This document shows positions 8,001-63,473 of a stretch of DNA of 64,000 bases, one piece after another. The position numbers and the translations under genes are program-made. The stretch spans positions 124,001-188,000 of the forward strand of contig CBFDEM010000036.1 in assembly GCA_965603825.1 (NCBI GenBank). Reading direction: 5' to 3'. The notes below the pieces were generated by a model. The model was not told the DNA's origin. It was given only the letters and a program-made list of their open reading frames with translations, and did not search any database. Numbering within the stretch: the stretch's first letter is position 1; each line of letters opens with the position of its first letter. Origin of the DNA: Blepharisma stoltei ATCC 30299 (Eukaryota; Protista; Ciliophora).

Positions 8001-11000
8001 AAAATAGATGATGAGATTACTATTTTTGAACTAACCAAATAAATCAAACCTAAGTTTGATGCATAATTATTGGAAAATTGGGATAAAATTAGAGAAGAAG
8101 GCACCAAATTGCAGTTAAAAGCATAGATTGCAGACCCATCACTTTCGCATGAATTTTTTTCTAATTTTGAATTTAATATAAAAAATTGAGACTCTTGTTC
8201 AGCGTTTAGTACTCCACCTCTCATTTTTGCTTTATTTTGAATAAATGAACAACTTTCACAATGAAAAATCGATTTCGAAGTAATTGCTATGGCTCCTCCG
8301 TATTCCTCACATGTATTATTTAAAAATTGCGATGAGCTTGCATATAAAATAGCAGAGTTTTGAAGGTAAAAACAAGATCCATAAGGAGCAGAATTAAACT
8401 GAAAAACAGAACCATTATCTGTAAAATAATCAAAATTCAAAAAAGCGACTCTTGCATTGTTGTATTCAAAAACAGAATTCTTAGTTTCAACAGTTGAATT
8501 TCTATTTTGACTGTCTGCATATATAACTGAGCTTCCAGTATTATTTCTGAAAATAGAGAGCTCAATGCATATTTTTGAAGGCAAATTTTTTTTATCTTCT
8601 CCTATATCAATTGCCAAAACAGCAGCCAAATATGAAGAATTTTCAATGAAAACACAGGATTTAAAAGATAAAATTCCACTGCTGAAATATAGTATTATAG
8701 TTCCTGACTGTTTTGAAACGTTTTCATTGAAACTAGAAACTAATATAACTGACTCTTTAGAAAGTGCTACTGAGCTATCGATATATAAGGCTGCACCATT
8801 ATGTGCATAATTTCCTATAAAATTTGATTGCAAGATTCTAAGATCAAGACTTTCTGATGGTCTTGAGCTCTGAGTCAAAAAAATTGCTCCTCCATTAGAA
8901 GAAGCTGAATTTTGGATAAAATCACTTGATGATATAAGAAGCGACGATATTTTATTATTTTGCAGCAAAGAAATAAAATATAAGGCTCCACCACTGCCCT
9001 GCCTTGACTCATTTGAATCAAAGATTGAAGACTCAATAAAAATACTTACTCCTGAAAAATAAACTGCAGGGGATAAACTTGCTGAGTTATTAATGAAAGA
9101 ACAGTTTGATATATATAAAATATTCTCACTCTCTACCCCTAGTGCACCATATCCTGAAATGTAATTGTTTATATTCTCAATAAATTCTAAATTAGTGAAA
9201 TTTCTATCATAAGATCCTGTAAAATAAAAACATACTGGCAATCGTCCATTTCCAACATTTCCAGAGCAGCTTAGAGAATTTAAACTATTGGAATTTGAAT
9301 TATCAATTATAAAAGTTGGCGATGAATTTCTGCAGATATTTTTTGTAATATTAACACCTTCAATACCTAAATTAATTGATTTCGATAAACTCACCATATA
9401 TTCACAATCTAAAGTTTTTGCATCATATTTTTCTTTACTTATATACAAGTCTCAAGCATCCCTATTTTCAATAAAATATTTAAGAACTAGGGAATTGACA
9501 TCTGCATCATCGTACGGAGATCCATTAGAATCTATAGTCAAATTTTTTAAATCAAAGTTGACCAAATTTACTGCAGTGATCATTCCTTTGGCATGATTAT
9601 TTTTGAAAGAAATATCAATAAATTTGCATCATCTCGGGACTGAAAAGACATCAATGGATCTTGAATTCTTTATAATAATTTGGGTTGTTTTGGTTTTATA
9701 ATAATCTAATATGGCTGAGTTGTATATATAAATTAATGAATTACTTTCTGCTCCATTTAATTCAAAGGTCAAATTGCTTAGGTGAACATTTAATAGCAAG
9801 CCAACAAACTCTACACGGATTAATCCCAATTTTCCATAGTTTGATATAAAATTGGTGTTCTTAATGTCTATGTGAGAAATAGTCACATAAGTTAAATATC
9901 AAGTTTCGTTAAAACTAGAATCATAACTGTCTATATTTAATTTGCTGTAAAATATCCCTGTTTCGCAATAATTATACATAAAAGTGCAGTTATCCATTTC
10001 AAATTTTGCCAAATTGCTAATATATATTAGTGAGCCACTCGAAAGAGAGCTTTGCGGTTTTAAATAAATCAAATTATATTTAAAATCCACATTTTTTATA
10101 GTAAGAGCTGAATTTGATTCATAATATAGAAATCCCCGAAAATCAAGTGGGTCTCCAAATTCAAATCCGTTATTTAATCTAGTCACAGAGCCTCCTAAGT
10201 AAGTAAAATTTCCATCTGGATGCACAACTGCATTTTTTTCTTTACCACTTAGCCATATATTATCAAAAAATACATTAAATAGCTCAATTGCCCCATTCCC
10301 AGATATAATGGAGTCATAATTGAATCTAAAATTTCTAATTTCAACATTCGTTAATGTAAATGCAGATTTAGCATAAAATAGGCTAAGACTCCCAGTTTCT
10401 TCAATCTGGCAGCTATCTAAAGATATATTTTGTGATATGCGCTGATTTCTATCATTATAGTAATAGCCGTCACTTTCATTATAAAAACTATAGGCACAAT
10501 AATCGCAATATATAGAATTACACCCATTATCCTGTCCAGATCCATCGATAATCACATTTTCAAACTTGATATAAGAAACCATTGAGCATGAAAGCCGCGA
10601 TCATCCATTAATCTTTATCAAAATCTTACTTCCATCATACGAGGCTATAACAACAGATGAGACTTTTCCTAAAGGATCACAGTCAGTTAAAGTATAATTT
10701 CCATCGTTATATAAATAGAAATAAATTTGTTGATTATCTCATTCTGGTGGATCAAGTATTTCAGTATTAGACAGTTTAGACTGTAATGCATAATCAAGTG
10801 TTTCAAAAGGAAAAATCAAAGTCCCATTTCCTGATGGATAAGGCCCTTTCTGAGTTGAAGTCACATAATAAAACTGAAAGTCTGGATGCTTAAAGAGTTT
10901 TCAATTATTATAGTAGAGTAAATAAAATTCACCTATGTATAAAGCCGAAGGATAACAGACATTGTTTAAGGCTCCACATAGATCACAGCTGTAAAGATTA

Positions 11001-12172
11001 CAATAATTACATAAATTTCCTTCAGGAAAATCAGGACAATTCCTTAAATCTATAATGTGGCATAAGCCGTAATTACATTCTCTAAAAAAACATTCAGGGT
11101 AGCATGATACTGAGTCTAATGACATTGTTACATTGCATTTATTAGATGATACAATTGAGCAAGCTTCAAAAGATACAATAGCATTTAAACTATGATAAAA
11201 ATATTGCTGATAAATGGTGTATTTTATTAAATCTTCATCATAGCACCACTTGCTAGGATCACTGCTTACTCTATCATACTTGCAATCACTTACTAAACAC
11301 TCTGGTTTGCATTTTCCATAATCTTCTGGCATACAATAAGGTGAACACCCACAAGCAAAATTGTCATATTTACAACGAAAAGTATTGCAAGCTTCATCAC
11401 ATACCTCGTTTCTAAGCATGTCTAAATAGCATCCACTCTCACAAAAGCCACAATTTCCAGCATCAAAATCACAATCATAGGTATTGCAAACCTCATCACA
11501 TATATCATTTTGTAATAACTCTAAAGTGCATCCAGAAAAGCAATCACAGTCGAATTCATCATAATTGCATTCTTCGACATGACAAGCTTCGTCACAAATG
11601 GAATTTCCAATCATTCACAAATAGCAATTAGGTGCACAAGTGACATTGAAGCAGTCTCCATTATCATAATTGCATTGGGAATTATTACATTCATCATTAC
11701 ATATCCCATCTCCTCATATAGTCAAATTGCAGCCTTCAGCACATTCTCAGCAGGCTCCCATGTCAAAATAGCAAGATTCTGTAGCGCACTCAGGATCGCA
11801 CTCGTTTCCTAATTGAGATTTTTGACCTATATATGGAATACATGATTGAGCGCAGTAACCGCAATCTCCTAAGTCATATCCGCAATAAAACTTATCGCAC
11901 CAATCATCGCAATAGCCATCCCCAAGAAAATTCAAATCGCAAGATCTAACGCTGCTAGGGCATTGTGAAAGACAATCTGAGCTTTCAACTTGAGTTGAGG
12001 AATTATAAAGACCTCCTGTATCATAATTGCAAAAAGGATTCATGCAGCCAGGATTGCATATGCCATCGCCTCGCTGATTAGGAATTACGAATATTGGAGG
12101 GCATTTGTTGGGATTGCACAGCATATCTATGCTAAAAACAGGAATTCAAAAGATCAAAGAAAGCCAGAACAT
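5051..12172 (-). CDS. Family B receptor copy B1, ~2368 aa: signal peptide, ~7+2 LNR, beta-helix, stalk, Cys-rich module, ~9 TM
   Basis: ATG 12172 (MFWLSLIFWIPVFS), TAA 5051-5053. All ORF-track fragments share one frame joined by TGA. C-terminal RYGFLFNGYKDNHYFWEF motif plus hydrophobic segments. Confidence 0.92.
12074..12088 (-). other. 15-nt in-frame, stop-less intron GTAATTCCTAATCAG (read as VIPNQ in the ORF track)
   Basis: GT-AG with A at -6. Homologous position to the family A introns. Removal gives CPPIF|RGDGICNPGC, which aligns gap-free to A CPDIM|KGNHQCNPEC. Confidence 0.82.
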
Positions 12173-12373: not shown

Positions 12374-15300
12374 TTATTGAATGCTCTCTTTATCTTCTAG
12401 TGCATGGCTTTTATTGATTGATATGCTATTTGATACTAGAGAAACTTCAATTCGATTGAAAGCTGCTTTTGAATTTTCACTGTTATAACTGTTTTCGTCT
12501 GAACAATTTGCCACTTTTTTTGATTTTCTGAGACTCTTAATTTTATTAATTATTGATCGAGAAATCGATTTGAGGACGCAAAATGATCAATAAATTAAAA
12601 AATAGCAATTTGCTATGACAATAATTGCAAAGAAAAAGTATCCAGCTTCATCATTTAAAGATCCCATTAAATAGTAAAGCCCACTTCATATAGTGACTGC
12701 ACAGACTATCCTTGACCTTAATTCCATTTGATTTAGATTAGGCTCAGTATAAGGGTTATTTGAATACTGTAGTCTTAAATATATTGAATATAAAATAGCC
12801 ACAATTATTGCTTGAATCTTTAAAGATACTCTTGCTAAAAAAACTGAACAGCAAATAAGAATAATTTTACTATACAAAATGATAAATTCCCAAAAATAGA
12901 GATTATCTTTGTATCCATTGAAAAGAAACCCATATCTTAGACGCACACCTAAATCACTCAGTCTGCTTTTATTTTTAATTAGATTTATTAAGCAAACTGT
13001 AGGCAAAATAATTCCCCATAAAATAATAGATGGCAATGAAATGGTTGCCACATAAACCATATGATCATAATTTCAGCATCTAAAATCAAGATTTTCTTCT
13101 AATCAATATTCGCCAGGATTAATTTCTGTGCAATTCATTGATGCAAACATTTTTCTCACTATACTTGGATGAATTAAAAATAATAAAATAATCCCAGTTG
13201 ATATAAAATCATCCCAAAATGTTTTGTATGAAGTTTTGGCTAGTTTTATAATAATCCAAAAAAATAAACTCAAAACCAACATAATTGCTGGAATTAAAGC
13301 CACCATAATAAGAATTTTGAAATAAACTAAATTGCTGCTATCATTTGATCCAAATAAGCATTGGCATGAATAAATTTGCTGATACACATAATCTGCATTA
13401 TTTTGAATATTAAAAAGGGTCAAAACTTCAGATGATCAGTTGAGCTTAAAAGTGGATACTAAAATGATCATTTGAAAATAATTCAAAAATATTTTTATGA
13501 AAATTGAAATTTGGGACTTTGGCTTTAGAGCGGATTTTCTTGTTGTTTTTATTATAATTGCCAATAAAATAATTAACCCTATTGTTATTCCTATAGTCAC
13601 TAAAACGTTAGTTCTATATCCTGGACACTTTTCACATTTGTTGCTTGAAGTATAAGAAAACCCTGCTTTGCAAGATTGACATTTATTGCCCTTGTAGGCT
13701 TCACTGCATTCACCTGTATATGAAATATTGTTTATGTTAGGCGAGCCTAAACAAGATGAAGGATAGGGACATTTTCAAAATTTATCTGTATATATATTGT
13801 CTCTCCAATATCCAGGGCGTGGAACCATTGTATAATTTCCAAGGCATTGAGCTTCATCGGGACAAGAAAGACAAGAAATCAAGTTTGGGTTCAAACTAAA
13901 ACCCATGGGGACATATTTGACAATTTTTTCCTGATATGACCTCTCCAATTTTGCATTTTCTCATATTCACATTTAATATTAAATTTTGGCTATAATTGCT
14001 TTGACCTGAAGATTTTATTTTGGAAATATCAATTGCTGAAGAAGTAGCAATTATTTGAATATTCGATCCAGGCTCAGCAGAAATAACAAGTTCAGAGAAG
14101 TTAAATATTCCTTTTGATGCAGTAACTTTTGTTGTTCCAGAAATTTGGGTTCTTAAACTTGTAGATTTAAGCACTGCTTCACTAACATTATCAGTGGCTA
14201 TGATATGATTTAAATCGTCAACCAAAGCAATTTGCAGTTGATTTTTAATGCGTTGTCCAGGTGCGATTTCTGTTAAATTTAGGCTTGAAACAGGGTCTGA
14301 TAATAATCTTTTGCTATTAAAACCTGCTAAACTGCCATCTGCTTTTACTTGCATTAGCTTGATTGGATATGAAGCTATATCTTTACCGTATTGAGCTGCG
14401 TTATTTTTATATGTATTATTGAAAAGTGAAGGAGTTTGGTCATCTCAGCTGATACCTCCACCATTATATTCAGCGAAGTTTTCAATAAAAACGCTTGAAT
14501 TAATATCAAATTTACATTTTTTTGTATCGAAACAATTCATATTGATTCCCCCTCCAATCCCACTATCAATGTTTTTATTTGTTAAGTCTTGGCTTGAAAT
14601 AGCTTTATTTTGCTTAAAATTGGAAAAAATTATTTTTAAATTTGCATTATTCGAGTATATTGCTCCTCCATTTTGTGCCGAGTTATTTAAAAACTTGCTT
14701 GAAGTCACATTAGCGTTGCTACTGATATCTTTTGTAGATTTAAAAAATAAAGCACCTCCATGTAAAGACGCAAAATTATTCGCAAAATTACAATATATAA
14801 TTTCTATATTTCTACATGAATCACAATAAAGAGCTCCTCCATCATTTCCTGAACCATTGCTAAATGAAGAATTTACAATTTCTAGCTTTTTTATTTGTTT
14901 TCCATATATTCCTGTAACAGAAAATTTATTAAAGATTGAATTTTCAATTGATAATTCGACTTGATTCACATTGATAACTCCACCTCCAATAAGGCTTTCT
15001 ATATCAACGAAATTCGAGCTATTTATGGATATTTGGCTATCAAAAGAAGCATAAATTGCACCGCCACTAGGAGATGATAATTTGTTAAAAAATGAGTCCT
15101 TGATTAATAAAACACTTGAGCTTGCATAAATTGCTCCACCTCTTTCACTTGATTTTCCATTAGAAAAGGTTGCATTAGCTACATATGCATTGCTTTCTGC
15201 TAATAAATATATAAAACTTCCTGAAATACTTCTTTGATTTTCAAATTTTGAATCATATATTTCTGCATTCGAATACGTTAGTGATAATCCTGGAGTGTAT

Positions 15301-18300
15301 CCTTCAGCTGAATTATTGCTAAAAATGGATGATGAGATCACTATTTTTGAGCTAACCATATTAATCAAACCTAAGTTTGATGCATAATTGTTGGTAAATT
15401 GGGATAAAATTAGAGAAGAAGCTACCAAATTGCAGTTAAAAGCATAGATTGCAGACCCATCATTTTCACATGAATTTTTTTCGAATTTTGAATTTAATAT
15501 AAAAAATTGAGACTCTTGTTCAGCGTTTAGTACTCCACCTTTTCTTTTTGCTTTATTTTGAATAAATGAGCAACTTTCACAATAAAAAAATGATTTCGAA
15601 GTAATTGATATCGCTCCGCCGTATTCTTCACATGTATTATTTAAAAATTGTGATGAGCTTGCATATAAAATAGCAGAGTTTTGAAGGTAAAAACAAGATC
15701 CATAAGGAGCAGAATTAAACTGAAAAACAGAACCATTATCTGTAAAATAATCAAAATTCAAAAAAACGACTCTTGCATTGTTGTATTCAAAGACAGAATT
15801 CTTAGTTTCAACAGTTGAATTTCTATTTTGGCTGTCTGTATAAATAACTGAGTTTCCAGTATTTTTTCTGAAAATAGAGAGCTCAATACATATTTTTGAA
15901 GGCAAATTTTTTGTATCTTCTCCTATATCAATTCCCAAAACAGCTGCCAAATATGAAGAGTTTTCAATGAAAACACAGGATTTAAAAGATAAAATTCCAC
16001 TGCTGAAATATAGAATTATAGTTCCTGACTGTTTTGAGACATTTTCATTGAAATTAGAAACTAATATAACTGACTCTTTAGAAAGTGCTACTGAGCTATC
16101 GATATATAAAGCTGCACCATTATTTGCATAATTTCCTATAAAATTTGATTCCAAAATTTTAAAGTCAAGACTTTCTGATGACCTTGAGCTCTGAATCAAA
16201 AAAATTGCTCCTCCATTAGAAGAAGCTGAATTTCGAATAAAATCACTTAATGATATAATAAGCCACGATATTTTATTATTTTGAAATAAAGAAACAAAAT
16301 ATAAGGCTCCACCATTGCCCTGCCTCGATTCATTTGAATCAAAGATTGAAGACTCAATAAAAATACTTACTCCTGAAAAGTAAACTGCAGGGGATAAACC
16401 TGCTAGGTTATTAATGAAAGAACAGTTTGATATATACAAAGTATTTTCACTCTCAACTCCTAGTGCACCATAACCTGAAATGTAATTGTTTATATTCTCA
16501 ATAAATTTTAAATTTGTGAAATTTCTATCATAAGATCCTGTAAAATAAAAACACACTGGCGATGGTCCATTTCCAACATTCCCAGAGCAGCTTAGAGAAT
16601 TTAAGCTATTGGAATCTGAATCATCAATTATAAAAGTTGGTGATGAATTTCTACAGATATTTTTTGTAATATTAACATCTTCGATATATAAATTAATTGA
16701 TTTCGATAAACTCACCATAAATTCACAATCTACAGCTTTTGCATTATATTTTGGTTTACTTAAATATAAGTCATAAGCATCCCTATTTTCAATAAAATAT
16801 TTCAGAATTAGAGAATTGACATTTGAGTCTTCGTACGGAGATCCATTAGAATCTATAGTCAAATTTTTTAAATCAAAATTAACCAAATTTACTGTAGTGA
16901 TCATTCCTTTGGCATGATTATTTTTGAAAGAAATATCAATAAATTTGCATCATCTTGGAACTGAAATGGCATCAACGTATCTAAAATTATTAAAAACAAT
17001 AGTTTGGGTTGTTTTTGTTTTATAATAATCTAATACTGCAGAGTTGTATATATAAATTAATGAATCGCTTTCTGCGCCATTTGAATCAATGGTTAAATTA
17101 CTTAGGTGAACATTTAATAGCAAGGCAAGAAACTCTACTCGGATTAATCCAAATTTTCCATAGTTTGATATAAAATTGGTGTTCTTAATGATTATATGAG
17201 TAATAGTCATATAAGTCAAATAAAAAGTTTCATTAATACTAGAGTCGTATCTTTCTATATTTAATTTGCTGTAAAATATTCCTGTTTCACAATAATTATG
17301 CATAAAAGTGCAGTTATCAATTTCAAATTTTTTCAAATTACTAATATATATTAGTGAACCAGTCGAAAGAGAGCTTTTTGGTTTTAAATAAACCAAATTA
17401 TATTTAAAATCCACATTTTTTATAATAAAAGTCGAATAAGATTCAGAATACAAAAATCCTCGAAAATCAAGTGGGTCTCCAAATTCAAATCCGTTATTCA
17501 ATCTAGTCACAGAGCCTCCTAAGTAAGTAAAATTTCCATGTGGATGCACAACTGCATTTGTTTCTTTTCCACTTAGTCATATATTATCAAAAATTACATT
17601 AATTAGCTCAATTGTCCCATTCCCAGATATAATAGAATCATAATTGAATCTAAAATTTCTAATTTCAACATTTCTTAATGTCAATTCAGAATCAGCATGA
17701 AATAGGCTAAGACTCCCAGTTTTGTCAATCTGACAGCTATCTAAAGATATATTTTGTGATATGCGCTGATTTCTATCATTATAGTAATAGCCGTCACTTT
17801 CATTATAAAAACTATATGCACAATAATCGCAGTATATAGAATCACACCCATTATCTTGCCCAGATCCATCGATAATAACATTTTCAAACTTGATATATGA
17901 AATCATTGAGCATGAAAGCCGCGATCATCCATTAATCTTTATCAAAATCTTACTTCCATCATATGAGCCTATTACAACGGATGAGGGCTTTTCTAAAGGA
18001 TCACAGTCAGTTAAAGTATAATTTCCATCGTTAAATAAATAGAAATAAAGTATTTGATTTTCCAATATAGATGGATCCGCTAAACTTTGATTAATAGGCA
18101 GTTTAAACTGTAATGCATAATCAAGTGTTTCAAATGGAGAAATCGCAGTCCCATTTCCTGATGGGTAAGACCCTTTCTGAATTGAAGTCACATAGTAAAA
18201 CTGAAAATCTGGATGCTTAAAAAACTTTCAATAATTAATGTCGGTTAAAGCAAATTCACCTATGCTAAAAGTTGAAGGATAACAGTAGGTGAGGTTGCAT

Positions 18301-19482
18301 AAATAGCAGTCGTAAATACTACATTTATTGGGAAAAGATTGAGGTATATTAGGACACCCATGATACCCATCATTTAAGTGGCATAAGCCAAAATTACATT
18401 CTTCAAAAAAACATTCAGGGTAGTAGGATTTGTAGTCTAATGACATTGTTAAATTGCATTTATTAGATGATGCCACTGAACAAATTTCAAAAGATACAAT
18501 AGCATTTGTATTATAAGTAAAACTTTGCTGATAAATGGTGTATTTTATTAATTCTTCATCATAGCATCACTTGCTAGAATCACTGCTGACTCTATCATAC
18601 TTGCAATCTTTTACTAAACATGCTGGTTTGCATTTTCCATAATCTTCTGGCATACAATATGGTGAGCATCGACAAGCAAAATTGTCATATTTACAACGAA
18701 AAGTATTACAAACTTCATCGCATACCTCGTTTCTAAGCATGTCTAAGTGGCATCCACTTTCACAAAACCCACACTTTTCAGCATCAAAATCACAATTATA
18801 GGTATTGCAAACCTCATCGCATACATAACTCTGAAGTACATCCAGGAGAACAATCACAATCAACATCATCGTAATTGCATTCTTCAGCATAGCAAGTTTC
18901 ATCACAAATGGAGTTTCCAATCATTCACAAGTAGCAATCAGGCGCACAAGTGATATTGAAGCAGTCTCCATTATCATAATTGCATGGGGAACTATTACAT
19001 TCCTCATTACATATCCCATCTCCTCATATAGTCAAATTACAACCTTCGGCACATTCTGAGCAGGCTCCCATGTCATAATAGCAAGAATCTGTGTTGCACT
19101 CAGGATCGCACTCATTTCCTAATTGAGATTTTTGACCTATATATGGAATACATGATTCAGCGCAGTACCCGCAATCTCCTAAGTCATATCCGCAAAGATA
19201 ATCTTGGCAATGTTGAGCGCAATCGCCATTCCCAAGAGTACTTAAAGTGCATTCACCACCCCAAGCAGGGCATTGTGGAAAACAATCTGAGCTTTGAGCT
19301 TGAGCTGAGGTATTATAAAGAACTCCTGTATCATAATTGCAAAAAGGATTCATGCAGCCAGGATTACATGTGCCATCGCCTCGCTGATTAGGAATTACCA
19401 CTATTGGAGGGCATCTGTTGGGATTGCACAGCATATCTATACTAGAAACAGGAATTCAAAAGGTCAGAGAAAGCCAGAGCAT
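12374..19482 (-). pseudogene. Family B copy B2, two frameshifts
   Basis: ATG 19482, homologous TAA 12374-12376. An 11-nt deletion at ~18824 (GAGTTATGTATGC vs B3 GAATTATTAGAAAATGATATATGC) and a 2-nt deletion at ~13898 (TTTTAGTTTG vs TTTTATAGTTTG). Frame arithmetic of the ORF pieces matches both. Confidence 0.85.
19384..19398 (-). other. 15-nt intron GTAATTCCTAATCAG in B2
   Basis: Identical to the B1 intron, same position. Confidence 0.8.
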
Positions 19483-22625: not shown

Positions 22626-25600
22626 ATGCTCTGGCTTTCTCTGACCTTTTGAATTCCTGTTTCTAGCATAGATATGCTGTGCAATCCTAACAAATGCCCT
22701 CCAATAGTCGTAATTCATAATTAGCGAGGCGATGGCATATGCAATTCTGGCTGCATGAATCCTTTTTGCAATTATGACACAGGAGGTTTTTATAATACCT
22801 CAACTCAAATTCAAAGCTCAGATTGTCTTTCAAAATGCTATAGCAGCACTCCTTTTTGCGATTTCAGTATTCTTGGGGATGGCAATTGCGATATTCCGTG
22901 CGGTAAATTTTTTTGCGGATATGACTTAGGAGATTGCGGGTACTGCGCTGAATCATGTATTCCATATATAGGTCAAAAATCTCAATTAGGAAATGAGTGT
23001 GATCCTGAGTGCGATACAGATTCTTGCTATTATGACATGGGAGCGTGCTCAGAATGTGCCGAAGGCTGCAATTTGACTATATGAGGAGATGGGATATGCA
23101 ATGAGGAATGCAATAGTTCTCCATGTAATTATGATAATGGAGACTGCTTCAATATCACTTGTGCGCCTGGCTGCTACTTGTGAATGATTGGAAACTCCAT
23201 TTGTGATGAAACTTGCTATGTTGAAGAATGCAATTATGATAATCTTGATTGCGATTGTTCTCCTGGATGCATTCCAGAATTATTAGAAAATGATATATGC
23301 GATGAGGTTTGCAATACCTATAATTGTGATTTTGATTCTGAAAAGTGTGGGTTTTGTGAAAGTGGATGCTATTTAGACATGCTTAGAAACGAAGTATGTG
23401 ATGAAGCTTGCAATACTTTTCGTTGTAAATATGACAATTTTGATTGTGGATGCTCACCGTATTGTATGCCAGAAGATTATGGAAAGTGCAAGCCATCGTG
23501 CTTAGTAAGTGATTGCAAGTATGATAGAGTAAGCAGTGATCCTAGCAAGTGGTGCTATGATGAAGATTTAATAAAATACACTATTTATCAGCAATATTTT
23601 GCTGGGAGTACAAATGCTATTGTATCTTTTGAAATTTGCTCAGTCGCATCATCTAATAAATGCAATATAACAATGTCATTAGACTTAACATCATGCTACC
23701 CTGAATGCTTGTTTAAAGAATGTAATTATGGCTTATGTCATATTATAGATAAGGATAATTGTCCTGTTTTACCTCAATTATTTTGCGATTTTTGTAGTAT
23801 TTACAGCTGCGATCTATGTAACATTGTCAATGGCTGTTATCCTTCATCTTTATACATAGGTGAATTTTATTTAACCTACAATAATCATTGAAAACTCTTA
23901 AAGCATCCAGACTTTCAGTTTTACTATGTGACTTCAACTCAGAAAGGGCTTTACCCAGCAGGAAATGGGACTGTGATTTCTCCATTTGAAACAATTGATT
24001 ATGCATTGCAGTCTAAACTGTCTAGCGAAAGCTTATTGGATCCACCTATATTGCGAAATCAAATACTTTATTTCTATTTATATAACGATGGAAATTATAG
24101 TTTAACTGACTGTAATCCTTTAGGAAAAGCCTCATCTGTTGTAATAGCCTCATATGATGGGAGTAAGGTTTTGATAAAGATTAATGGATGATCGAGGCTT
24201 TCATGCTCAATGGTTTCTTATATCAAGTTTGAAAATGTGATTATTGATGGATCTGGACAGGATAATGGGTGTAATTCTATATATTGCGATTATTGTGCAT
24301 ATAGGTTTTATAATGAAAGTGACGGCTATTACTATAATGATAGAAATCAGCGCATTTCGCGAAATATATCTTTAGATAGCTGCAAGATTGACAAAACTGG
24401 GAGTCTTAGCCTATTTTATGCTAAATCTGCATTTACATTAACGAATGTTGAAATTAGAAATTTTAGATTCAATTATGACTCCATTATATCTGGGAATGGG
24501 ACAATTGAGCTAATTAATGTAATTTTTGATAATATATGACTAAGTGGAAAAGAAGCAAATGCAGTTGTGCATTCATATGGAAATTTTACTTACAAAGGAG
24601 GCTCTGTGACTAGACTAAATAACGGATTTGAATTTGAAGACCCACTTGATTTCCGAGGATTTTTATATTCTGAATCTTATTCGACTTTTACTATAAAAAA
24701 TGTGGATTTTAAATATAATTTGGTTTATTTAAAACCACAAAGCTCTCTTTCGACTGGTTCACTAATATATATTAGTAATTTGAGAAAATTTGAAATTGAT
24801 AACTGCACTTTTATGTATAATTTTTGTGAAACAGGGATATTTTACAGCAATTTAAATATAGAAAGTTATGATTCTAGTTTTAATGAAACTTGATATTTAA
24901 CTTATGTGACTATTTCTCACATAGACATTAAGAACACCAATTTTATATCCAACTATGGAAAATTTGGATTAATCCGTGTAGAGTTTCTCGGTTTGCTATT
25001 AAATGTTCACCTAAGCAATTTGACCATTGAATCAAATGGAGCAGAAAGCGATTCATTAATTTATATATACAACTCTGCAGTATTAGATTATTATAAAACC
25101 AAAACAACCCAAACTATTGTTTTTAACAATTTTAGATACGTTAATGTCATTTCAGTTCCAAGATGATGCAAATTTATTGATATTTCTTTCAAAAATAATC
25201 ATGCCAAAGGAATGATCACTACAGTAAATTTGGTTAATTTTGATTTAAAAAATTTGACTATAGATTCTAATGGATCTCCGTACGAAGACTCAAATGTCAA
25301 TTCTCTAATTCTTAAATATTTTATTGAAAATAGGGATGATTGAGACTTATATATAAGTAACCCAAAATATAATACAAAAGCTGTAGATTGTGAATTTATG
25401 GTGAGTTTATCGAAATCAATTAATTTATATATCGAAGGTGTTAACATTACAAAAAATATCTGCAGAAATTCATCACCAACTTTCATAATTGATAAGTCAA
25501 ATTCCAATAACTTAAATTCTCTAAGCTGTTCTGGAAATATTGGAAATGGAAAATTGCCAGTGTGCTTTTATTTTACAGGATCTTACGATAGAAATTTCAC

Positions 25601-28600
25601 TAATTCAAAATTTATTGAGAATATAAACAATTACATTTCAGGGTATGGAGCATTAGGAGTAGAGAGTGAGAATACTTTATATATATCAAACTGTTCTTTC
25701 AATAATAACCTAGCAGGTTTATCCCCTGCAGTTTACTTTTCAGGAGTGAGCATCTTTATTGAGTCTTCAATCTTTGATTCAAATGAATCAAGGCAGGGCA
25801 ATGGTGGAGCCTTATATTTTGTTTCTTTATTGCAAAATAGTAGAATGTCGTCGCTTATTATATCATCAAGTGATTTTATTCGAAATTCAGCTTCTTCTAA
25901 TGGAGGAGCAATTTTTTTGATTCAGAGCTCAAGGTCATTAGAAAGTCTTGACTTTAAAATTTTGGAATCAAATTTTATAGGAAATTATGCAAATAATGGT
26001 GCAGCCTTATATATAGATAGCTCAGTAGCACTTTCTAAAGAGTCAGTTATATTAATTTCTAATTTCAGTGAAAATGTTTCAAAACAGTCAGGAACTATAA
26101 TGCTATATTTCAGCAGTGGAATTTTATCGTTTAAATCGTGTGTTTTCATTGAAAATTCTTCATATTTGGCAGCTGTTTTGGCAATTGATATAGTGGAAGA
26201 TACAAAAAATTTGCCTTCAAAAATATGCATTGAGCTCTCTATTTTCAGAAAAAATACTGGAAACTCAGTTATATATACAGAAAGCCAAAATAGAAAGTCA
26301 ACTATTGAAACTAAGAATTCTGTTTTTGAACACAACAATGCAAGAGTCGCTTTTTTGAATTTTGATTATTTTACAGATAATGGTTCTGTTTTTCAGTTTA
26401 ATTTTGCTCCTTATGGATCTTGTTTTTACCTTCGAAACTCTGCTATTTTGTATGCAAGCTCATCACAATTTTTAAATAATACATGTGAGAAAGACGGAGG
26501 AGCGATATCAATTACTTCGAAATCGTTTTTTTATTGTGAAAGTTGTTCATTTATTCAAAATAAAGCAAAAAGAAAAGGTGGAGTACTAAACGCTGAACAA
26601 GAGTCTCAATTTTTTATATTAAATTCAAAATTCGAAAAAAATTCATGTGAAAATGATGGGTCTGCAATCTATGCTTTTAACTGCAATTTGATAGCTTCTT
26701 CACTAATTTTATCCCGATTTTCCAACAATTATGCATCAAACTTAGGTTTGATTAATTTAGTTAGCTCAAAAATAAAGATCTCATCATCCATTTTTAGCAA
26801 TAATTCAGCTGAGGGATACAGCCCAGGATTATCACTAACATATTCGAATGCAGAAATATATGATTCAAAATTTGAAAATCAAAGAAGTACTTCAGGAAGT
26901 TTTATATATTTATTAGCTGAAAGCAATGCATATGTAGCTAATGCATCCTTTTATAATGGAAAATCAAGTGAAAGAGGTGGAGCAATTTATGCAAGCTCAA
27001 GCGCATTATTAATCAGTGACTCATTTTTTAACAAGTTATCGTCTCCTTATGGTGGTGCAATTTATGCTTCTTTTGATAGCAAAATATCCATCAATAGCTC
27101 GAATTTTATTGATATAGAAAGCCCTAATGGAGGTGGAGTTATCAATGCGAATCAAGTTGAATTATCAATTGAAAATTCAATTTTTAATAAATTTTCTGTT
27201 ACAGGAATATATGGAAAACAAATAAAAAAGCTAGAAATTGTAAATTCTTCGTTTAGCAATGGCTCAGGAAATGATGGAGGAGCCCTTTATTGTGATTCAT
27301 GCAAAAACATAGAAATTATTTATTGTAATTTTGCAAATAACTTTGCATCTCTATATGGAGGTGCTTTATTTTTTAAATCTGCAAAAGATATCAGTAGCAA
27401 CGTTAATATTACTTCAAGTCAATTTTTAAATAATTCGGCAGAAAATGGAGGAGCAATATACTCGAATAACGCAAATTTAAAAATAATTTTTTCCAATTTT
27501 AAGCAGAATAAAGCTATTTCAGGCCAAGACTTAACATATAAAAACATTGATAGTGGGATTGGAGGGGGAGTCAATATGAACTGTTTCGATACAAAAAAAT
27601 GTAAATTTGATATTAATTCAAGCAACTTTGTTGAAAATTTCGCAGAGTATAATGGTGGAGGTGTCAGCTGAGATGACCAAACTCCTTCACTTTTCAATAA
27701 TACATACAAGAATAATGCAGCTCAATATGGTAAAGATATAGCTTCATATCCAATCAAGCTAATGCAAGTAAAAGCAGATGGCAGTTTAGCAGATTTTAAT
27801 AGCAAAAGATTATTATCAGACCCTGTTTCAAGCCTAAATTTAACAGAAATCGCACCTGGACAACGCATTAAAAATCAACTGCAAATTGCTTTGGTTGACG
27901 ATTTAAATCGTATCATAGCCACTGATAATATTAGTGAAGCTGTGCTTAAATCTACAAGTTTAACAACCCAAATTTCAGGAATAACAAAAGTTACTGCATC
28001 AAAAGGAATATTTAACTTCTCTGAACTTGTTATTTCTGCTGAGCCTGGATCGAATATTCAAATAATTGCTACCTCTTCAGCAATTGATATTTCCAAAATA
28101 AAATCTTCAGGTCAAAGCAATTATAGCCAAAATTTAATATTAAATGTGAATATGAGAAAATGCAAAATTGGAGAGGTCATATCAGGAAAAAGTTGTCAAA
28201 TATGTCCCCAAGGGTTTTATAGTTTGAACCCAAACTTAATTTCTTGTCTTTCTTGTCCCGATGAAGCTCAATGCCTTGGAAATTATACAATGGTTCCACG
28301 CCCTGGATATTGGAGAGACAATATGTATACAGATAAATTTTGAAAATGCCCAAATACTTCATCTTGTTTAGGCTCACCTAATATAAATAATATTTCATAT
28401 ACAGGTGAATGCAGCAAATCCTACAAGGGCAATAAGTGTGAATCTTGCCAAGCAGGATTTTCTTATACTTCAAGCAATAGATGCGAGGAGTGTCCAGGAT
28501 ATAAAACTAACGTTTTAGTGACTATAGGAATAACAATAGGGTTAATTATTTTATTGGCGATTATAATAAAAACAACAAGAAAATCAGCTCTAAAGCCAAA

Positions 28601-29744
28601 ATCACAAACTTCAATTTTCATAAAAATATTTTTGAATTATTTTCAAATGATCATTTTAGTGTCCACTTTTAAGCTCAATTGATCATCTGAAGTTTTAACC
28701 CTTTTTAATATTCAAAATAATGCAGATTATATATATCAGCAAATTTACTCATGCCAATGCTTATTTGGAGAAAATGACAACAGAAATTTAGTTTATTTCA
28801 AAATTCTTATTATGGTGGCTTTAATTCCAGCTGTTATGCTAGTTTTGAGTTTATTTTTTTGGATTATTATAAAATTAGTCAAAACTTCATATAAAACATT
28901 TTGGGATGATTTTATATCAACTGGGATTATTTTACTGTTTTTAATTCATCCAAGCGTAGTGAGAAAAATGTTTGCTTCAATGAATTGCACAGAAATAAAT
29001 CCTGGCGAATATTGGTTAGAAGAAAATCTTGATATAAGATGCTGAAATTATGATCACATAGTTTATGTGGCAACCATTTCATTGCCATCTATTATTTTAT
29101 GGGGAATTATTTTGCCTACAGTTTGCTTGATAAATATTATTAGAAATAAAAGCAGACTTAGTGATTTAGGTGTGCGCCTAAGATATGGATTTCTTTTCAA
29201 TGGATACAAAGATAATCTCTATTTTTGGGAATTTATCATTTTGTATAGTAAAGTTATTCTTATTTGCTGTTCAGTTTTTTTAGCAAGAATATCTTTAAAA
29301 ATTCAAGCAATAATTGTGGCTATTTTATATTCAATATATTTACGACTACAGTATTCAAACAACCCTTATATTGAGCCTAATCTAAATCAAATGGAATTAA
29401 GGCTGAGGATAGTGTGTGCAGTCACTATATGAAGTGGACTTTACTATTTAATGGGATCTTTAGATGAAAAAGCTGGATACTTTTTCTTTGCGACTATTTT
29501 AATAGCAAATTGCTATTTTTTAATTTATTGATCGTTTTGCGTCCTCAAATCGATTTCTCGATCAATAATTAATAAACTTAAGAACCTCAGAAAATCAAAA
29601 AAAGTGGCAAATTGTTCAGACGAAAACAGTTATAAAAGTGATGATTCAAAAGCAGCTTTCAATCGAATTGAAGTTTCCCTAGCATCAAATAGTATATCAA
29701 TCAATGAAAGCCACTCTCTAGAAGATAAAGAGAGTATTCAATAA
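22626..29744 (+). CDS. Family B receptor copy B3, ~2367 aa
   Basis: ATG 22626 (MLWLSLTFWIPVSS), TAA 29742-29744. Single frame with TGA=Trp. The only in-frame TAG seen (22722-22724) is the 3' splice site of the 15-nt intron. Confidence 0.92.
22710..22724 (+). other. 15-nt intron GTAATTCATAATTAG in B3
   Basis: GT-AG with A at -6. Contains an in-frame TAG, so it must be spliced for this otherwise intact 7.1-kb ORF to be translated. Confidence 0.9.
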
Positions 29745-30849: not shown

Positions 30850-33800
30850 ATGATTTTTCTTGCTCTTTCCTTATGGTTTGCCAAAGGCTTAAATCTTACC
30901 TGTAGTTCATCGATTTGTCCAGATATTATGGTAATTTTTATTGTAGAAAGGTAATCACCAATGCAATCCTGAATGCATGACATCCTATTGCAACTATGAC
31001 ACTAGCACTCAGTTCTTTAGTTCAATCGATAAAAACAAATCAGATTGCTATGAAAATTGTGTTTTTGATGGTTGTGATGCCCAAAATCTAGGAAATGGTA
31101 TCTGCGATACTTCTTGTAACACTGAAAACTGCGGGTATGATTGAGGCGATTGCACTTGTTCCCCAGGGTGTTTAAATTCTATGCTTGGCGACGGAAATTG
31201 TGATGAAGCTTGTGATAATTGAAGCTGCGACCTTGATAATCATGACTGTGGGCAATGTGCAGATGGATGTTTTCCAACTATGTTAGGGAATGGAATATGC
31301 GATTCTGCTTGCAATAATGAAGATTGTTTATATGATTATAAAGATTGTCGATGCTCAGATGATTGCGAATGGACAGATTATGGAGCTTGTAAACCAGAAT
31401 GCTTGATATTCAGCTGCAATTATGACAAAGTGGATCAATATCCTAATAACTGATGCCAAGACGAGCCATTAGCTATTTTTTCGTCTTATCAGCAAATTAT
31501 CCGTAATGACTTTTCATATGTTGTGCTTCTAGAGGACTGTTATGAAGCTTCTAATTATGCATGCTCAGAAGAAAAAGCATTAAATTTTACAGATTGTTAT
31601 GAAGAGTGCAATATTTTAGAATGCAATTATGCCAATGGTAACTGCGAAACTCGTCATAATTATTATTGTCTTCGCTCTTATAATAATTTGAGTGGGTGCC
31701 TCTCATGCATAAACAATCAATATCAAGTTATTAAGTATTTATGAAATCAAACTTGCACATCATATCCCTTTTGAGAAGTAGGTGTCTGGCTATTTCCTGA
31801 TGGATCACTCGTAAAAATGCTTCCAAATGATACTTCGTCAGCAAAAAATCCTCATGTTTATTATGTGAAGCCAAGTGCAAATTCTAACTGATTAAGTGGG
31901 AATGGCACTTATTCTTCTCAATTTTCATCTTTAAGCTATGCACTTGCAAACATCCTGTATAGTTATTCGATTATTTATTTATCTCAAAGTAATTACTATA
32001 CTGAGCATCAGGCTATAAGAAAACAACAATTCCCTATGGTAAATAAATATTATGAAGCAAAATATATTTTTAGGCATTTAACTTCAAGAAATATAAAAGT
32101 TAAACCTTTGGATAATTCTCCAATCACTATAAGAAGAGCAAAAGACGATTCTAAATGGTCAATTATGAGGTTTCCTTTAACGAATATTCCAAATTTTGAA
32201 ATAAATAACGTCATTTTTGACTGGAAAAATACAGATTCCTCTTGTAATAATGATAATTACTGCGATTATTGCCCTATTGTTACTTCAAACTCAGATTTAA
32301 GTATTTATTATAACGATAGAGGTGAAAAAATTAGTGCATGTTTGCCTATTACGTGATGTTCAATGAATAACGCTATAAATTTTTTTGATGTTAAATCAAG
32401 CAATTTAGTATTAAACAACGTGAGTTTTATAAATTTTCGAACAGATTTTAATTCAATTTTTTGGGTCACAAATGACAGCAACCTGACTTTCAATAATGTC
32501 ATGTTTGATAATGTTAAAGTTTTTAATAGCGATAATTCAGCAATTATTTCATGGAACAGCTCAGGAAGTCTACAATTTAATAAAGGCACTGTGAGTAGGG
32601 TTAATAATGGATATGAAATAAAGGATTCATTTCGTATGAAAGGATTTTTAAATGTGATTTTTGCGAATTCTATTGTTTTGAGAAACGTTAATTTTATGCG
32701 TAATGTGGTGCTGGAACCGCTATCATTTGCTCCGAACAGAGGCACTTTATTATTTCTAAATTTATTTCAGATGCTAGAAATTGATTCTTGCGTTTTTATA
32801 TATAACTATTGCGAGCTTGGAATAATAAATATACAACCGCAATATTATGATTTTAGCAATGAAACTAATGAGGATGGAGAAATAATTTACTCAACTCTAA
32901 ATCATATTCATATTGTGAACTCAAATTTTACATCAAACTATGGGAAAGTAGCAGGAGTATTATACTTACATTATAATTATGAGCTTCAGAATTTATTAAT
33001 TGAAAATTCATCATTTACATTAAATGGGATTGAAACTGGACCTTTGATATATATTGAAAGTGATTATATCAACCAAAAATATTTATCAGATATTATTTTA
33101 GAAACCTCTGTTAATGGCAAAAATGCTGCTGAAAGAAAGTACTTAGCAAAATGAACAAAAATTCAAAACTCAAGCTTTGTTGAAAATTACTCTGGTAGTA
33201 GTGGTATTCTTGAAATTAAAAAAATGATTAATATAGATTTAAGGGATGTTTTTATGATTTCAAATGGCGTAATTTCATCTGAATCTATGAATGCTAACTC
33301 AATAATTTTAAAATACTATATTGAAAACCCAAATATGTATATAAAACTCAACGTTACTGATCCTCCAGATTTAAATTGTGAGTCTTTATCATCAATATCA
33401 GATTCCATTAACTTAAATCTAGATAAAGTGAGCATTTTAAAAAATTATTGTAAAAATTCTTTACCAGGAATTATTATATCAAATACAACAAATTCAACAA
33501 TAATTTCATCAAATTTTGAAAATAACAGTGGATCAGGTTTCAATGGGATTTGTTTAACGATAAATAAAAATGCTTTCATGACTATTAAAGACTCATTTTT
33601 CATCTCAAATCAGAATAATCAACCTAGAAATCCAGGTGCGATAAATAGTCTTTCCGATTTATTGTTACAAAATTGTTCATTTTTAAATAATATCGCAGAT
33701 TTAGGCGGAGCTTTGTATTTTGTTGGTCAGAACCTTAGAATTATCTCTTCACATTTTGACTCAAATAAATCGCCTAATTTAAATGGAGGTGCTATTTATT

Positions 33801-36800
33801 ATTCTTTATCTCTATATGATATCAATAACTTTTTATTTTCTATTACAAAAACAATTTTTACAAACAACTCCTGTACTCTAAATGGAGGGGGAATTTTCAT
33901 ATCAAAAAATTCTCCTGTTGAACTCTCATTAATGCTGAAAATTGATAATACTGATTTTTATAACAACAAGGCATATGCAGGCTCTTCGCTTTTTATAGAC
34001 GGAAATGCTCAACTTTCTACTGATTCTTCAATAAGTAATTGTAAATTTCAAGAAAATAAAGCAAGCTTCTCAGGCACTATTTGAGTCTATTATATTAATG
34101 GGCTATTGGAAATTAATTCTTGCAATTTTGTTAAGAACGATGGACTATTTAGCTCAGGGTTAAGTATAGCGATAGGTGAAAACAGCTCTGAAAAAATTTC
34201 GAAATTAACTTTAAACTCTTGCAATTTTCAATTTAATAAGGGTAACGTGACTATATCAATTGATAATCCTTATACAAACTCAACACTAGAAACAAATTAT
34301 TGCTTATTTGAATATAATTATGGATCTGTATTTTCACTTGATAATGGCTACGTAATTGATAAAAATTCAAGATTTCAGCACAATTATTCACCAAATTCTG
34401 GAGGAGTTCTGAACTTAAAGAATTCTGCAATTTTTGTAGCTGAAAATGCAATTTATATTAACTGCAGTAGCAGTCTTAACGGTGGAATAGCTTCGATTAG
34501 CATGAATTCTCAATACTTTTGCTTTTCTTGTAGATTTACAGAGAATTCCTCAAAATCCTCAGGAGGTGTTATATATGCTGACTCAGATGCTGCATTTCAT
34601 ATATATAGCTCAATACTTAATAAAAACTCATGTAAAAATAGAGGATCAGCTATATTCATGGCAAGTGCATTGGCTAATTCATCTATAGATAATTCTAAGG
34701 TAATTGAAAACTATTCATACGGTGAAGGAACTATAGCTCTTTTAGCATCAATCATTTCTATTAATTCCTTAGAAATTTCTAATAACTCAGTTAGCGAAAA
34801 ATATCCAGGGATTCATCTAGAAAATTCAAATGCTGTGATTGCCAACTCTTCCTTTTCTAATCAAAATGGAGATGAAGGCTGCTTTATTTTTCTAAGCTCA
34901 AGTTCCGTAGCGATCATAAATTCAAGCTTTCATGATGGATTTTCAAAAAATTCAGGAACAGCTTTGCATGCAACATCTAGCATCCTAAATATTTTTTCAA
35001 CAACATTTTTAAATCTTTTTTCAAATAGCGCAGGGGGATCAATTTATTTATGAGAAAACAGCAATCTTACTCTAAAAGATTCAATATTCATAAATTCAAA
35101 CTCATCAATCGACTCATATACAAGCTTTATCGAGATAACAAACACATCATTTACGAATTATTCAAGTTCTTGCATTTATGGATCTCAAATTAATTTATTA
35201 GCCAAATCATCCTATTTTTTAAACGGTTATAGCAGTACTGTTGGAGCAGCATTATATTGCTCGGAATGTAATAATATTTCTATAATTTCATCTGAGTTTT
35301 CAAATAATACTGCTCAAAAAGGAGGAGCTTTTTATATAGAAAATAAAGCTGATCATCTTAATTCTTCTCAATGCAATATAAAGTCTTCTAGATTTATTTC
35401 AAATATAGCTGGTAATGGAGGAGCTATTTGGACAAATAATATAAATTTGAATATTTTTGCATCAGTATTTGATGAAAATTACGCTAAAGATTGAGAGACA
35501 AAAACAATTCAAGAAATAGCTGATGGTATTGGAGGAGCTATAAGAGTGAGTTGTGAGGAATCAGAAATCCCTTGCTATTTTGATATTTCCTCAAACAATT
35601 TTAGTAGCAATTGGGCAGCTTATAAAGGAGGAGCTATCAACTGAGATGACTCAAGACCCAAATTGGAAAATAATAATTTTTGAAATAATTCAGCACTATA
35701 TGGAAATGATATAGCCTCGTTTCCAACTATGATGGTGTTTCTAAATGATACAAACCAAAGAGTTCTTCAATATCAAGGAAACTCTGAATTGACTCTTAAT
35801 AATATTGCATCTGGACAAAATAAAAATCCGCCATTAACTTTTGCTTTGGTTGATGATATTTCTCAGATAATTACAACCGATTGCATCAGTCAGACCCAGC
35901 TTCAATCTTTAAGTGATGATTTAATTATTTCTGGGACCTCAATTGCATATGCAGCGCACGGAATTTTTTACTTAAATGAATATATTATTTCAGCCAAACC
36001 AGGATCTTCTCTTCAAATCAACATTGTTTCTTCAGCGATAGATGAGTCAAAAATGAATAAATCTCCTTATTCAATACAAATGTCATCAAAATTGCCTATA
36101 TATGTAAACTTGAGGCTGTGTGAGATTGGTGAGGCAACTGTCGGTCTTGACTGTGAAATTTGTCTTGAAAATTATTATAATATTGATAGTAAAAAATCTA
36201 AGTGCTTAGATTGCCCTTCTTCTGCAATTTGCTATGGAAACTATACAATCGTTCCAAAGAGTGGCTATTGGAGAGACAATAAATTCACTGATCATTTTTG
36301 GAAATGTCCATATCCACCAGCCTGCTTAGGGTCTCCAGATATTTCAAACTTATCCTTTACTGGAAAATGTGCCAAAGGATACGAAAATAATATGTGTCAC
36401 TCATGTGCGAAAGGATATTCTAGATTATATAAAAACGAATGCCAAGAATGCAAAAGCACTGCTAGTAATGCTTTGAGGCTTTTAGGAATTTTTAGTTTGC
36501 TTGTTTTTATGGTGATAGCTATAATAAAAACTTCAAGAAAATCTGCATTCGAGCAGGCATCTTTGTCATCCATTTATATAAAAATTTTTTGGAATTATTT
36601 ACAGATCATGATTATAATAGCTACTTTTAGCTTAAATTGGCCTTATGAAGCAGTTCAATTATTTTATATCCAGACTTGCATGGACTATATAGGGGCCCAG
36701 CTATATTCTGCTGACTGTTTTTTGCAATCTTTATATTCAAAAAATGATGTCTATTATTACAAAATATTAATTACTAGTTTAACTCCATTTTCTCTTGCAT

Positions 36801-37747
36801 TCATTTGCCTGCTGTTATGATTGATAATTTATGCAATAAAAAAGAAAAATCTAAAAGAGTTTCTAGATGATTACCTATCGACATTTACAGTTATATTATT
36901 TTTGATTCACCCAAGTATCACAAATATAATGTTCAGTATTTTTAGTTGCAAAGAAGTAAATAGTGGAGAATACTGATTATATGCAGACCTTGGAATTAGA
37001 TGTTGGGACGGCCATCATTTACTTTATGGACTTTTATTCGCATTGCCTACAATAATTATTTGGGTAATTGCAGTCCCTGCACTCTGTCTTATAAAATTAG
37101 TAAAAAACAGAAGAAAACTAGAAGATATATCAATTAAAATGAAATTTGGATTTTTATTTAATGGCTACAACTTAAAGCATTATTATTGGGAATTTTTAAT
37201 CTTATACTGAAAAGTTATTTTAATTATACTTTCGGTGTTTTTCTCAAATTTTTCAATAAATATTCAAGCTCTTACCGTAGCTTTAATGCTTGCTATATTT
37301 CTCCATATTCAAGTTAAAAATCAGCCTTATTGTGTAACACTGGTCAATAAAGTAGAAATATTTTCTATAGTCGCTGCTCTTATAACAATTATAGCTGGCC
37401 TCTTCTTTATAACTGATGATTTAGATAGTATCGGTGATAATATTTTACTTGCTTTTTTATTGCTTTTCAACTTTATATTTATCATATATATAGCAACTCA
37501 GCTTCTAATGCAAATTTCTATATTTAAAAAATGCTTTGTCATTTTAGCAAATGTTTTGCACATTAACAAAGAAAAAAAATATCAAGTCAGGGATGACTTA
37601 GATTATAAAAATGTTAACGACCACGAAAGCAAGTTTATTACAGTCGGCATCTCAAGCGTTCAAAATTTATCTGAAATTAAGTATGATTCAATTGTTTCCA
37701 TGGAAATAGATCCTTTTGCTTCAGAAAATTCACAAGCTATAAGTTAA
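30850..37747 (+). CDS. Family A receptor copy A2, ~2293 aa: signal peptide, ~4+2 LNR, beta-helix, stalk, Cys-rich module, ~9 TM
   Basis: ATG 30850, TAA ending 37747. Removing the 16-nt intron gives 6882 nt in one frame. KFGFLFNGYNLKHYYWEF motif in the TM region. Confidence 0.92.
30931..30946 (+). other. 16-nt intron GTAATTTTTATTGTAG
   Basis: Needed to join the signal-peptide exon to the main frame (CPDIM|KGNHQC). Confidence 0.93.
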
Positions 37748-61800: not shown

Positions 61801-62733
61801 CTCTCAATGGCTAAAGATAGTGCAAGTTCGATTAAAATTATAAGCAATAATTTGATATTTATTATTTATGCATGTGAGGCAGCCACTAAAATTCTTATAA
61901 GAGCGCCGGCAATAGGCATCAGAATAATGTTCGCAGTTGCCATTGGCATAGTTGCATTCTAAAATATTGCATTCTTGATAACAGTTTACAAAATTTAATG
62001 CTTTTTCTTTTGAGCATGTATAATTAGAAGCCTTATAACAGTTTTCAAGATTCACAACATATGAAAAATCATTACGGATAATTTGCTGATAAGATGAAAA
62101 AATAGCTAATGACTTATTTTGACATCAATTATTAGGATATTGATCTATTTTGTCATAATTGCAGTTCGCTATCATGCATTCTGGTAGACATAATCCATAA
62201 TCTGTCCATTTGCAATTTTCGGCACATTGACAATCTTTATAATCGAATAAACAATCTTCATTATTGCATGCAGAGTCACATATTCCATTCCCTAGCATAG
62301 TTGGAAAACATCCATCTGCGCACTGTCCACAGTCATGATTATCAAGGTCGCAATTTCAGTTATCACATTCTTCATCACAATTTCCATCACCGAGCATAGA
62401 ATTAAAGCATCCTGGGGAGCAAGTGCAATCGCCTCAGTCAAATCCACAGCTTGTAGTGTTACAAGAAGTATCGCATATGCCATTTCCTAGATTTTGAGGA
62501 TCGCAGCCATCGAAAATGCAGTTTTCATAGCAGTCTGAGTTTTTTTTATGCAGTGAGCTATTAAATTGAAAACTGGTGTCATAATTGCAAAAGGACGTCA
62601 TACATTCAGGATTGCACTGGCGATTGCCTTTCTATGTAAAAATTACTATGATATCTGGGCAAATGTGCGAGCTGCAGGTAAGATCTAAACCTTTGACAAA
62701 TCATAAGAAAAGGAAAGCAATTAGAAAATTCAT
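55828..62733 (-). CDS. Family A receptor copy A3, ~2296 aa
   Basis: ATG 62733 (MNFLIAFLFLWFVKGLDLTC), TAA 55828-55830. Single frame, 15-nt intron. Confidence 0.92.
62632..62646 (-). other. 15-nt intron GTAATTTTTACATAG in A3
   Basis: GT-AG with an in-frame TAG. Junction CPDII|KGNRQC. Confidence 0.92.
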
Positions 62734-63370: not shown

Positions 63371-63473
63371 TAACTTTTTTCGCTATTTTTTGAGTGGCTT
63401 TAATCGGCTACTCTATACTCGGCACTTCTAGAAACTAAGTTCACCCATAATATATAAAAATAAAATATAGAGC

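Follow-up and report, generated by a model that had tools for sequence, protein, structure and literature searches.

The second LNR module (LNR2) of the B proteins of Blepharisma stoltei, which belong to an uncharacterised receptor-like ciliate family, is a real, selection-driven and clade-specific hypervariable LNR. Its cysteines are fixed and the residues between them are scrambled from copy to copy, as an earlier note on this DNA had described, and diversifying selection on these residues is well supported.

The B genes in their genomic setting

The DNA analysed here (the window, 64 kb with a GC content of 30%) is macronuclear genome sequence of Blepharisma stoltei. The macronuclear genome of strain ATCC 30299 has been reported to comprise 41 Mbp, with UGA coding for Trp and introns of 15/16 nt (PMC9942806); our family searches used a macronuclear assembly of 41.46 Mb in 64 contigs. 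Long open reading frames emerge in the window only if TGA is taken to code for an amino acid, and the TGA columns are Trp positions, which supports translation table 4 as the earlier note had proposed. Genetic codes 1 and 6 were rejected because they leave no full-length frames; code 25 yields frames identical to those of table 4 and was set aside because TGA falls at Trp positions and the code of B. stoltei is published.

Four B genes (B1 to B4) and three family-A genes (A1 to A3) lie in the window (Table 1). The B genes are tandem paralogues of about 2,360 amino acids each, with whole-protein identities of 87-90% among B1-B3 and 78-79% against B4, and the public protein P0001, which served as query in the full-length searches, is 99.7% identical to B1; the other searches used single exons or pieces free of TGA. 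A query with the stalk gave 75 matches, which correspond to about 65-70 genes arranged in tandem clusters throughout the genome. The LNR-bearing architecture was also found in Stentor coeruleus (SteCoe_7231) and in metagenomic contigs, and this shared architecture, together with the 15-nt first intron in a relative of 50% GC (see below), indicates that the family is old in heterotrich-like ciliates. The family is transcribed and at least partly spliced, as seen in low-depth RNA contigs, one of which is identical to B3 over 24018-24173.

Interspersed with the receptor genes is a second tandem family of open reading frames of about 600-770 amino acids (38299-40242, 41180-44057, 52178-54499 and 63000-64000), with Cys/His-rich N-termini and a DNA identity of 65-79%; a Pfam search with one piece of it gave no match. 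A distinct LNR-rich type of protein is encoded at L023 (G000:C48:293820-296883), where an open reading frame consists almost entirely of tandem LNR-like repeats that extend over more than 400 amino acids.

Table 1. Genes of the window and features of B3 (positions within the window)
Feature	Position	Strand	Remarks
Family-A paralogue A1	1..4796	-	control; extends beyond window edge
B1	5051..12172	-	LNR2 patch 11882-11962; intact; matches public P0001
B2	12374..19482	-	LNR2 patch 19192-19272; frameshifted; recent pseudogene or assembly error
B3	22626..29744	+	2,362 aa (table 4) after removal of two 15-nt introns
Family-A paralogue A2	30850..37747	+	control; LNR2 conserved; without LNR3-5
B4	44758..51930	-	LNR2 patch 51640-51720; intact
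Family-A paralogue A3	55828..62733	-	control
Signal-peptide-like hydrophobic N-terminus of B3	22626..22667	+	predicted from sequence
LNR1 of B3	22680..22826	+	loop insertion of ~14 aa ahead of sixth Cys
Intron 1	22710..22724	+	15 nt; in-frame TAG in B3; position family-wide
LNR2 hypervariable patch of B3	22836..22916	+	whole LNR2 to 22937; fixed Cys/Leu/Gly frame
LNR3-LNR8 of B3	22944..23531	+	conserved: 73-90% identical, omega 0.10-0.19
Intron 2 (probable)	22957..22971	+	15 nt, in frame; position family-wide
Second hypervariable Cys-framed patch	23739..23849	+	LNR/beta-helix junction; omega>1 too
Third variable patch	24018..24089	+	contains indels
Right-handed beta-helix / Chlamydia Pmp-repeat rod	24333..27755	+	approximate limits; PF13229, PF02415; omega ~0.25
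Cys-rich stalk	28158..28490	+	weak Ephrin_rec_like and DUF7630 matches, under cut-off
Multi-pass membrane domain	28503..29555	+	~9-10 long helices; omega ~0.2

Two candidate introns of 15 nt (GTA..AG) are present in every B gene. The first, intron 1, is missing as a gap of 15 nt from RNA contigs that represent family copies in runs X9 and X11, and since the in-frame TAG of B3 falls inside an intron whose position is spliced in these contigs, a nonsense mutation or UAG read-through was rejected. The position is also occupied in the 50%-GC metagenomic relative, an ENA metagenome contig (L047:9830-9870) that uses the standard code and carries three clustered family genes, two of them with LNR matches; the 15-nt intron 1 in this contig indicates that the tiny intron predates Blepharisma. 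The equivalents of intron 2 carry in-frame stops in four paralogues (L027, L035, L037 and L038), and the intron is spliced out in the public B1 model; one RNA contig, however, runs across it without a gap, so that it may be partly retained. Intron 2 is identical in B1-B3, with public models in conflict over its removal, and its retention may give rise to two LNR3 isoforms that are 5 amino acids apart.

B2 is frameshifted at two sites, having lost 11 nt near 18826 and 2 nt near 13898. It shows no decay beyond these two deletions and is either a very recent pseudogene or the product of an assembly error; the ratio of its private changes outside the patches (56 synonymous to 31 nonsynonymous) indicates that it was under purifying selection, and thus functional, until recently.

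Variability of LNR2 and the evidence for selection

The four LNR2 peptides reported earlier were recovered in B1-B4, where 8 of the 27 columns of the patch are invariant (five Cys, one Leu and two Gly) and all six cysteines of the module (C66, 73, 83, 87, 92 and 99) are unchanged. Pairwise amino acid identity in the patch (columns 66-92) is 0.42, compared with 0.88 for the remainder of B1-B3, and the patch ranks first in variability among the 27-aa windows of B1-B3 and second among those of B1-B4. In 2,000 rounds of column shuffling the null maximum divergence was 0.43 for B1-B3 and 0.48 for B1-B4, whereas the observed value was 0.58 (p=0.0005). Compared module by module, LNR2 has an identity of 0.48, and the values of the seven remaining LNRs are 0.73-0.90. 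Such variability is not unique to LNR2, as the junction patch at 23739-23849 is about equally variable and the third patch somewhat less so. The acidic C-terminal D/E-x-x-D of LNR2 is kept in B1-B4, whereas other candidate Ca2+-ligand positions vary, and B1-B3 lack the otherwise common Asn after Cys4. The flanks of the patch had been described as invariant, which holds for CMNPFCNYDTG; the "YIG" of the other flank is probably intronic in part, since its "YI" lies inside the probable intron 2, and the LNR1 loop between CMNPFCNYDTG and LNR2 is 68% identical among the B copies.

The expectation that a mere hotspot would produce, a dN/dS of at most 1 together with raised dS, is not what we observed among B1-B3, where the proposal of diversifying selection is upheld. 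The value of pN is 0.383 in the LNR2 patch and 0.056 elsewhere (about 7-fold), that of pS is 0.179 in the patch and 0.164 elsewhere, and pairwise omega in the patch is 2.1-3.8. None of the 15 LNR2 codons whose amino acid is invariant in B1-B3 carries a silent difference, compared with 285 of 1916 such codons elsewhere, and the codons adjoining them differ at two to three bases. Fixed codons free of silent change next to codons rewritten to this extent are not what a hotspot or import from an old donor would produce.

Codon models were built for translation table 4, comprising M1a/M2a comparisons and partition tests of the patch. M2a was preferred over M1a with an LRT of 91 and omega2=12, and 6 of the 14 sites with a posterior above 0.9 fall in LNR2; when double and triple hits were allowed, the LRT was 44 for the four copies and 21 for B1-B3. 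The partition test for LNR2 with a free local rate gave an LRT of 18.2 (p=2e-5), or 12.2 with multiple hits (p=5e-4), and as the patch was picked after its variation had been seen, correction over about 87 windows brings these to p~0.002 (single-hit) and p~0.04 (multi-hit). The local rate multiplier of LNR2 was indistinguishable from 1. For the intact pair B1/B3 alone, omega>1 in LNR2 was supported at p=0.004, and at p=0.036 with multiple hits. No more than four close copies enter the comparison, and the signal leans on the frameshifted one, B2: when B2 was left out (B1, B3 and B4), the whole-gene multi-hit test lost significance (p=0.19) and that of the patch was marginal (p=0.059). Pseudogene decay of B2 as the cause was rejected on account of purifying selection outside the patches and the omega>1 of B1/B3 alone. 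Informative sites reveal a mosaic history among the B copies. Elsewhere in the macronuclear assembly, no sequence was found that could have served as donor for the patch of B2 or B3, and somatic or combinatorial diversification was not seen in these data.

Clades were assigned from a FastTree tree of 26 proteins and pairwise comparisons. Hypervariability of LNR2 is confined to the B clade and one related pair, L033/L034 (83% identical and in the same major clade as B), where LNR2 is the most variable window (26-27%) and where omega>1 and a higher local rate are inseparable. In L034, which is otherwise intact, LNR2 has lost two cysteines (C>S and C>W; L034:7389-7559). The sister clades provide a built-in control, for LNR2 is conserved in them: it is 80-100% identical in five recent groups (family A, the C8 trio, P0004/P0180, L015/L022 and L039/L024), and in family A and the C8 trio the variability lies at the junction instead. 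Both family A and the C8 trio (L041, L042 and L044) are without LNR3-5 owing to an internal deletion, and one family-A junction patch shows omega>1 (p~0.01-0.02).

A fifth variant of LNR2 comes from a contig of run X8 over the B3 module. This run shares 16% of words, at about 94% identity, and is probably from strain HT-IV. The contig differs from B3 by 11 listed base changes and 8 amino acid changes, and all 8 of the latter fall at LNR2 columns that were already variable, none at fixed ones (p=0.034). Between B3 and X8 pN and pS in LNR2 are both 0.136 (omega~1), which exceeds the gene average omega of 0.3.

Domain architecture and relation to known proteins

In order, the B proteins consist of a signal peptide, eight LNRs, a Cys-rich junction, a Pmp-like beta-helix, a Cys-rich stalk and a membrane domain. 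The LNR identity given in the earlier note was confirmed by PF00066, which matched the exon-2 pieces of all four B genes in two stretches each (26-37 bits, cut-off 21.2). In an AF2 model of the LNR (pLDDT 78), the Foldseek matches listed were all to the Notch NRR, PAPP-A or 1PB5, weak in that E was above 0.5, with an rmsd of 1.1-1.8 over 24-31 residues; a VIA-align search returned no match. Like the LNRs of the Notch NRR and PAPP-A, those of the B proteins are six-Cys modules with G[DN]G-x-C and C-x-[YF]D-x-x-DC motifs. Unlike Notch, the B proteins have eight N-terminal LNRs and are without EGF, HD or ANK domains; identity as a Notch receptor was rejected since neither an EGF array nor ANK was found and a beta-helix rod and a multi-pass domain are present instead.

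The beta-helix carries GGA[ILV] and FxxN motifs. In the AF2 model of the B1 membrane domain (pLDDT 87), about 9-10 long helices are predicted, and a comparison with PDB chains, GPCRs included, gave no significant fold match; identity as a GPCR or adhesion GPCR was rejected on both grounds. Three paralogues score 13-17 bits against PF06011 (fungal TRP-like Pkd2/Flc), below the cut-off of 28.5, and an Atlas feature match of the domain to PF06011 TRP (0.94) serves as a lead only. According to the Atlas clusters, the domain is widespread in eukaryotes, with weak TRP/Pkd2-like similarity. Judging from these models, it may represent an undescribed channel or receptor fold.

The stalk and membrane domain are homologous to those of ciliate and protist Pmp-repeat multi-TM proteins (35% for Stentor, 27% for Tetrahymena). 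Stentor SteCoe_7231 and the metagenomic relatives carry LNRs as the B proteins do, whereas for the Tetrahymena matches, annotated "transmembrane protein, putative", no LNR is listed. These relatives, with a Pmp-repeat beta-helix, a Cys-rich segment of the Ephrin_rec_like/DUF7630 type and several TM helices, are uncharacterised, and no hypervariable LNR has been described in them. The B proteins also resemble MTA/MTB, mtA and MRC2: all are large ciliate proteins in which the N-terminal ectodomain is variable, the stalk is rich in Cys and the membrane part comprises several TM helices. Of these, MRC2, of the Tetrahymena mating-type recognition complex, with a pectin-lyase fold and 8 TM (PMC10901506), is the nearest characterised analogue, although the likeness is in outline only. 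Members of the Paramecium mtA family combine 5 TM with Ig-like beta-sandwiches (bioRxiv 2024.10.01.616003), and Tetrahymena MTA/MTB, also with 5 TM, are arranged as a head-to-head pair that DNA rearrangement selects, whereas the B genes are tandem co-resident paralogues. Identity with MTA/MTB/mtA was rejected because the B proteins combine a beta-helix and LNR ectodomain with about 9-10 helices rather than five TM, a GFR stalk and a beta-sandwich.

The earlier note had also held that LNRs are known mainly from the Notch NRR and not as variable binders. Ligand contact outside Notch is in fact on record, as LNR3 of PAPP-A contacts both substrate and inhibitor (PMC9579167), and the LNR as a contact module is therefore already known; what is new is an LNR that is hypervariable and positively selected, and we found no such report for the LNRs of Notch or PAPP-A. 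A literature search for LNRs in Blepharisma or other ciliates, or for LNRs under positive selection, yielded nothing relevant.

Possible roles of the variable module

These observations are most readily explained if the products of the B genes are large proteins of the plasma membrane, from an expanded heterotrich-ciliate family whose members arise and are lost by gene birth and death. Once the genes had been duplicated in tandem, selection repeatedly favoured ordinary point substitutions between the cysteines of LNR2 and, likewise, in the two junction patches, with the disulfide frame and the remaining protein kept by purifying selection. LNRs have little core and are held together by disulfides and Ca2+, so that the residues between their cysteines are mostly free to face outward. 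Selected change between cysteines on a fixed frame suggests that LNR2 contributes to a surface in contact with a changing partner outside the cell. Most likely, each copy would sense or adhere to a different molecule, such as a surface of prey, a symbiont, a pathogen or a conspecific, with the LNR array providing the contact site at the far end of a rod-like beta-helix spacer, and the multi-pass domain relaying the signal. The surface location, the exposure of the variable residues, the binding, the signalling and the nature of the partner are inferences, and on balance we consider a role in recognition or adhesion probable. The same combination of a fixed frame, omega>1 between the frame residues, tandem duplication and pseudogenes characterises germline-encoded diversified recognition families such as Dictyostelium TgrB1/C1, plant LRR receptors and Cys scaffolds of the cone-snail type; in the B proteins, by contrast, the scaffold is an LNR and the organism a free-living ciliate.

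The same pattern of omega>1 would be expected if LNR2 were an exposed docking site of a virus, parasite, predator or toxin that diversifies to avoid being bound, the protein's own job being independent of those residues. The clade-specific effect fits such an escape, and the two cysteines missing from L034 and the Asn missing from B1-B3 would then be change for its own sake. However, LNR2 and the two junction patches vary jointly in a large duplicated family, as they would in a repertoire of binders, and no antagonist is known, so that we regard escape as the less likely reading. As it fits equally well and positive selection cannot separate the two, the "CDR-like binder" of the earlier note is an inference. 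A further possibility is that LNR2 lost its role in the B clade, after which the residues between its cysteines drifted neutrally. Conservation of LNR2 in other clades makes such a loss possible, and the omega~1 between B3 and X8 and the weaker tests without B2 are in keeping with it. For B1-B3, however, relaxed constraint is largely refuted, and overall it appears very improbable: omega=1 at the gene-wide rate fits far worse (LRT 49, or 30 with multiple hits), adjoining codons have undergone two to three changes with silent sites unchanged, and Cys, Leu and Gly stay fixed.

The mosaic of informative sites, and a pS that is raised against B4 and in L033/L034, could instead reflect a mutation hotspot, or cassette-like conversion from diverged and possibly germline-limited donors that rewrites LNR2. 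We give this little credence, given the lack of any silent excess among B1-B3, the local rate no different from 1 and the absence of a B2 or B3 donor from the macronuclear assembly. Finally, the B proteins could act in conjugation, for example as a receptor of gamone 1, a glycoprotein pheromone, or as a cell-pairing adhesin, comparable to MTA/MTB or MRC2. Ciliate mating-recognition proteins are likewise large and multi-pass with a Cys-rich stalk, as is MRC2 with its pectin-lyase fold (PMC10901506), and transcripts of the family are present in RNA runs probably taken from a conjugation time course. Against this, Blepharisma has two mating types (PMC9942806) rather than dozens, the B genes are co-present tandem paralogues rather than alternative alleles, and MTA/MTB/mtA differ in their five TM helices and beta-sandwich ectodomains; a role in mating or species recognition is hence highly unlikely.

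In summary, few receptors have been named with which free-living ciliates could distinguish prey, pathogens and kin. The B family offers a concrete candidate in which candidate specificity sites have been mapped by selection. The LNR is an ancient eukaryotic module whose original role has yet to be settled (PMC2770060); our results would extend it, familiar as the auto-inhibitory shield of Notch and the exosite of PAPP-A, to a diversifying scaffold, which bears on that ancestral role outside animals. More tentatively, heterotrichs might possess a germline-encoded repertoire of dozens of receptors for non-self, be it prey, symbionts, viruses or kin. Within one of its clades, an LNR would have become the variable binding determinant, coupled to an undescribed multi-pass signalling domain.
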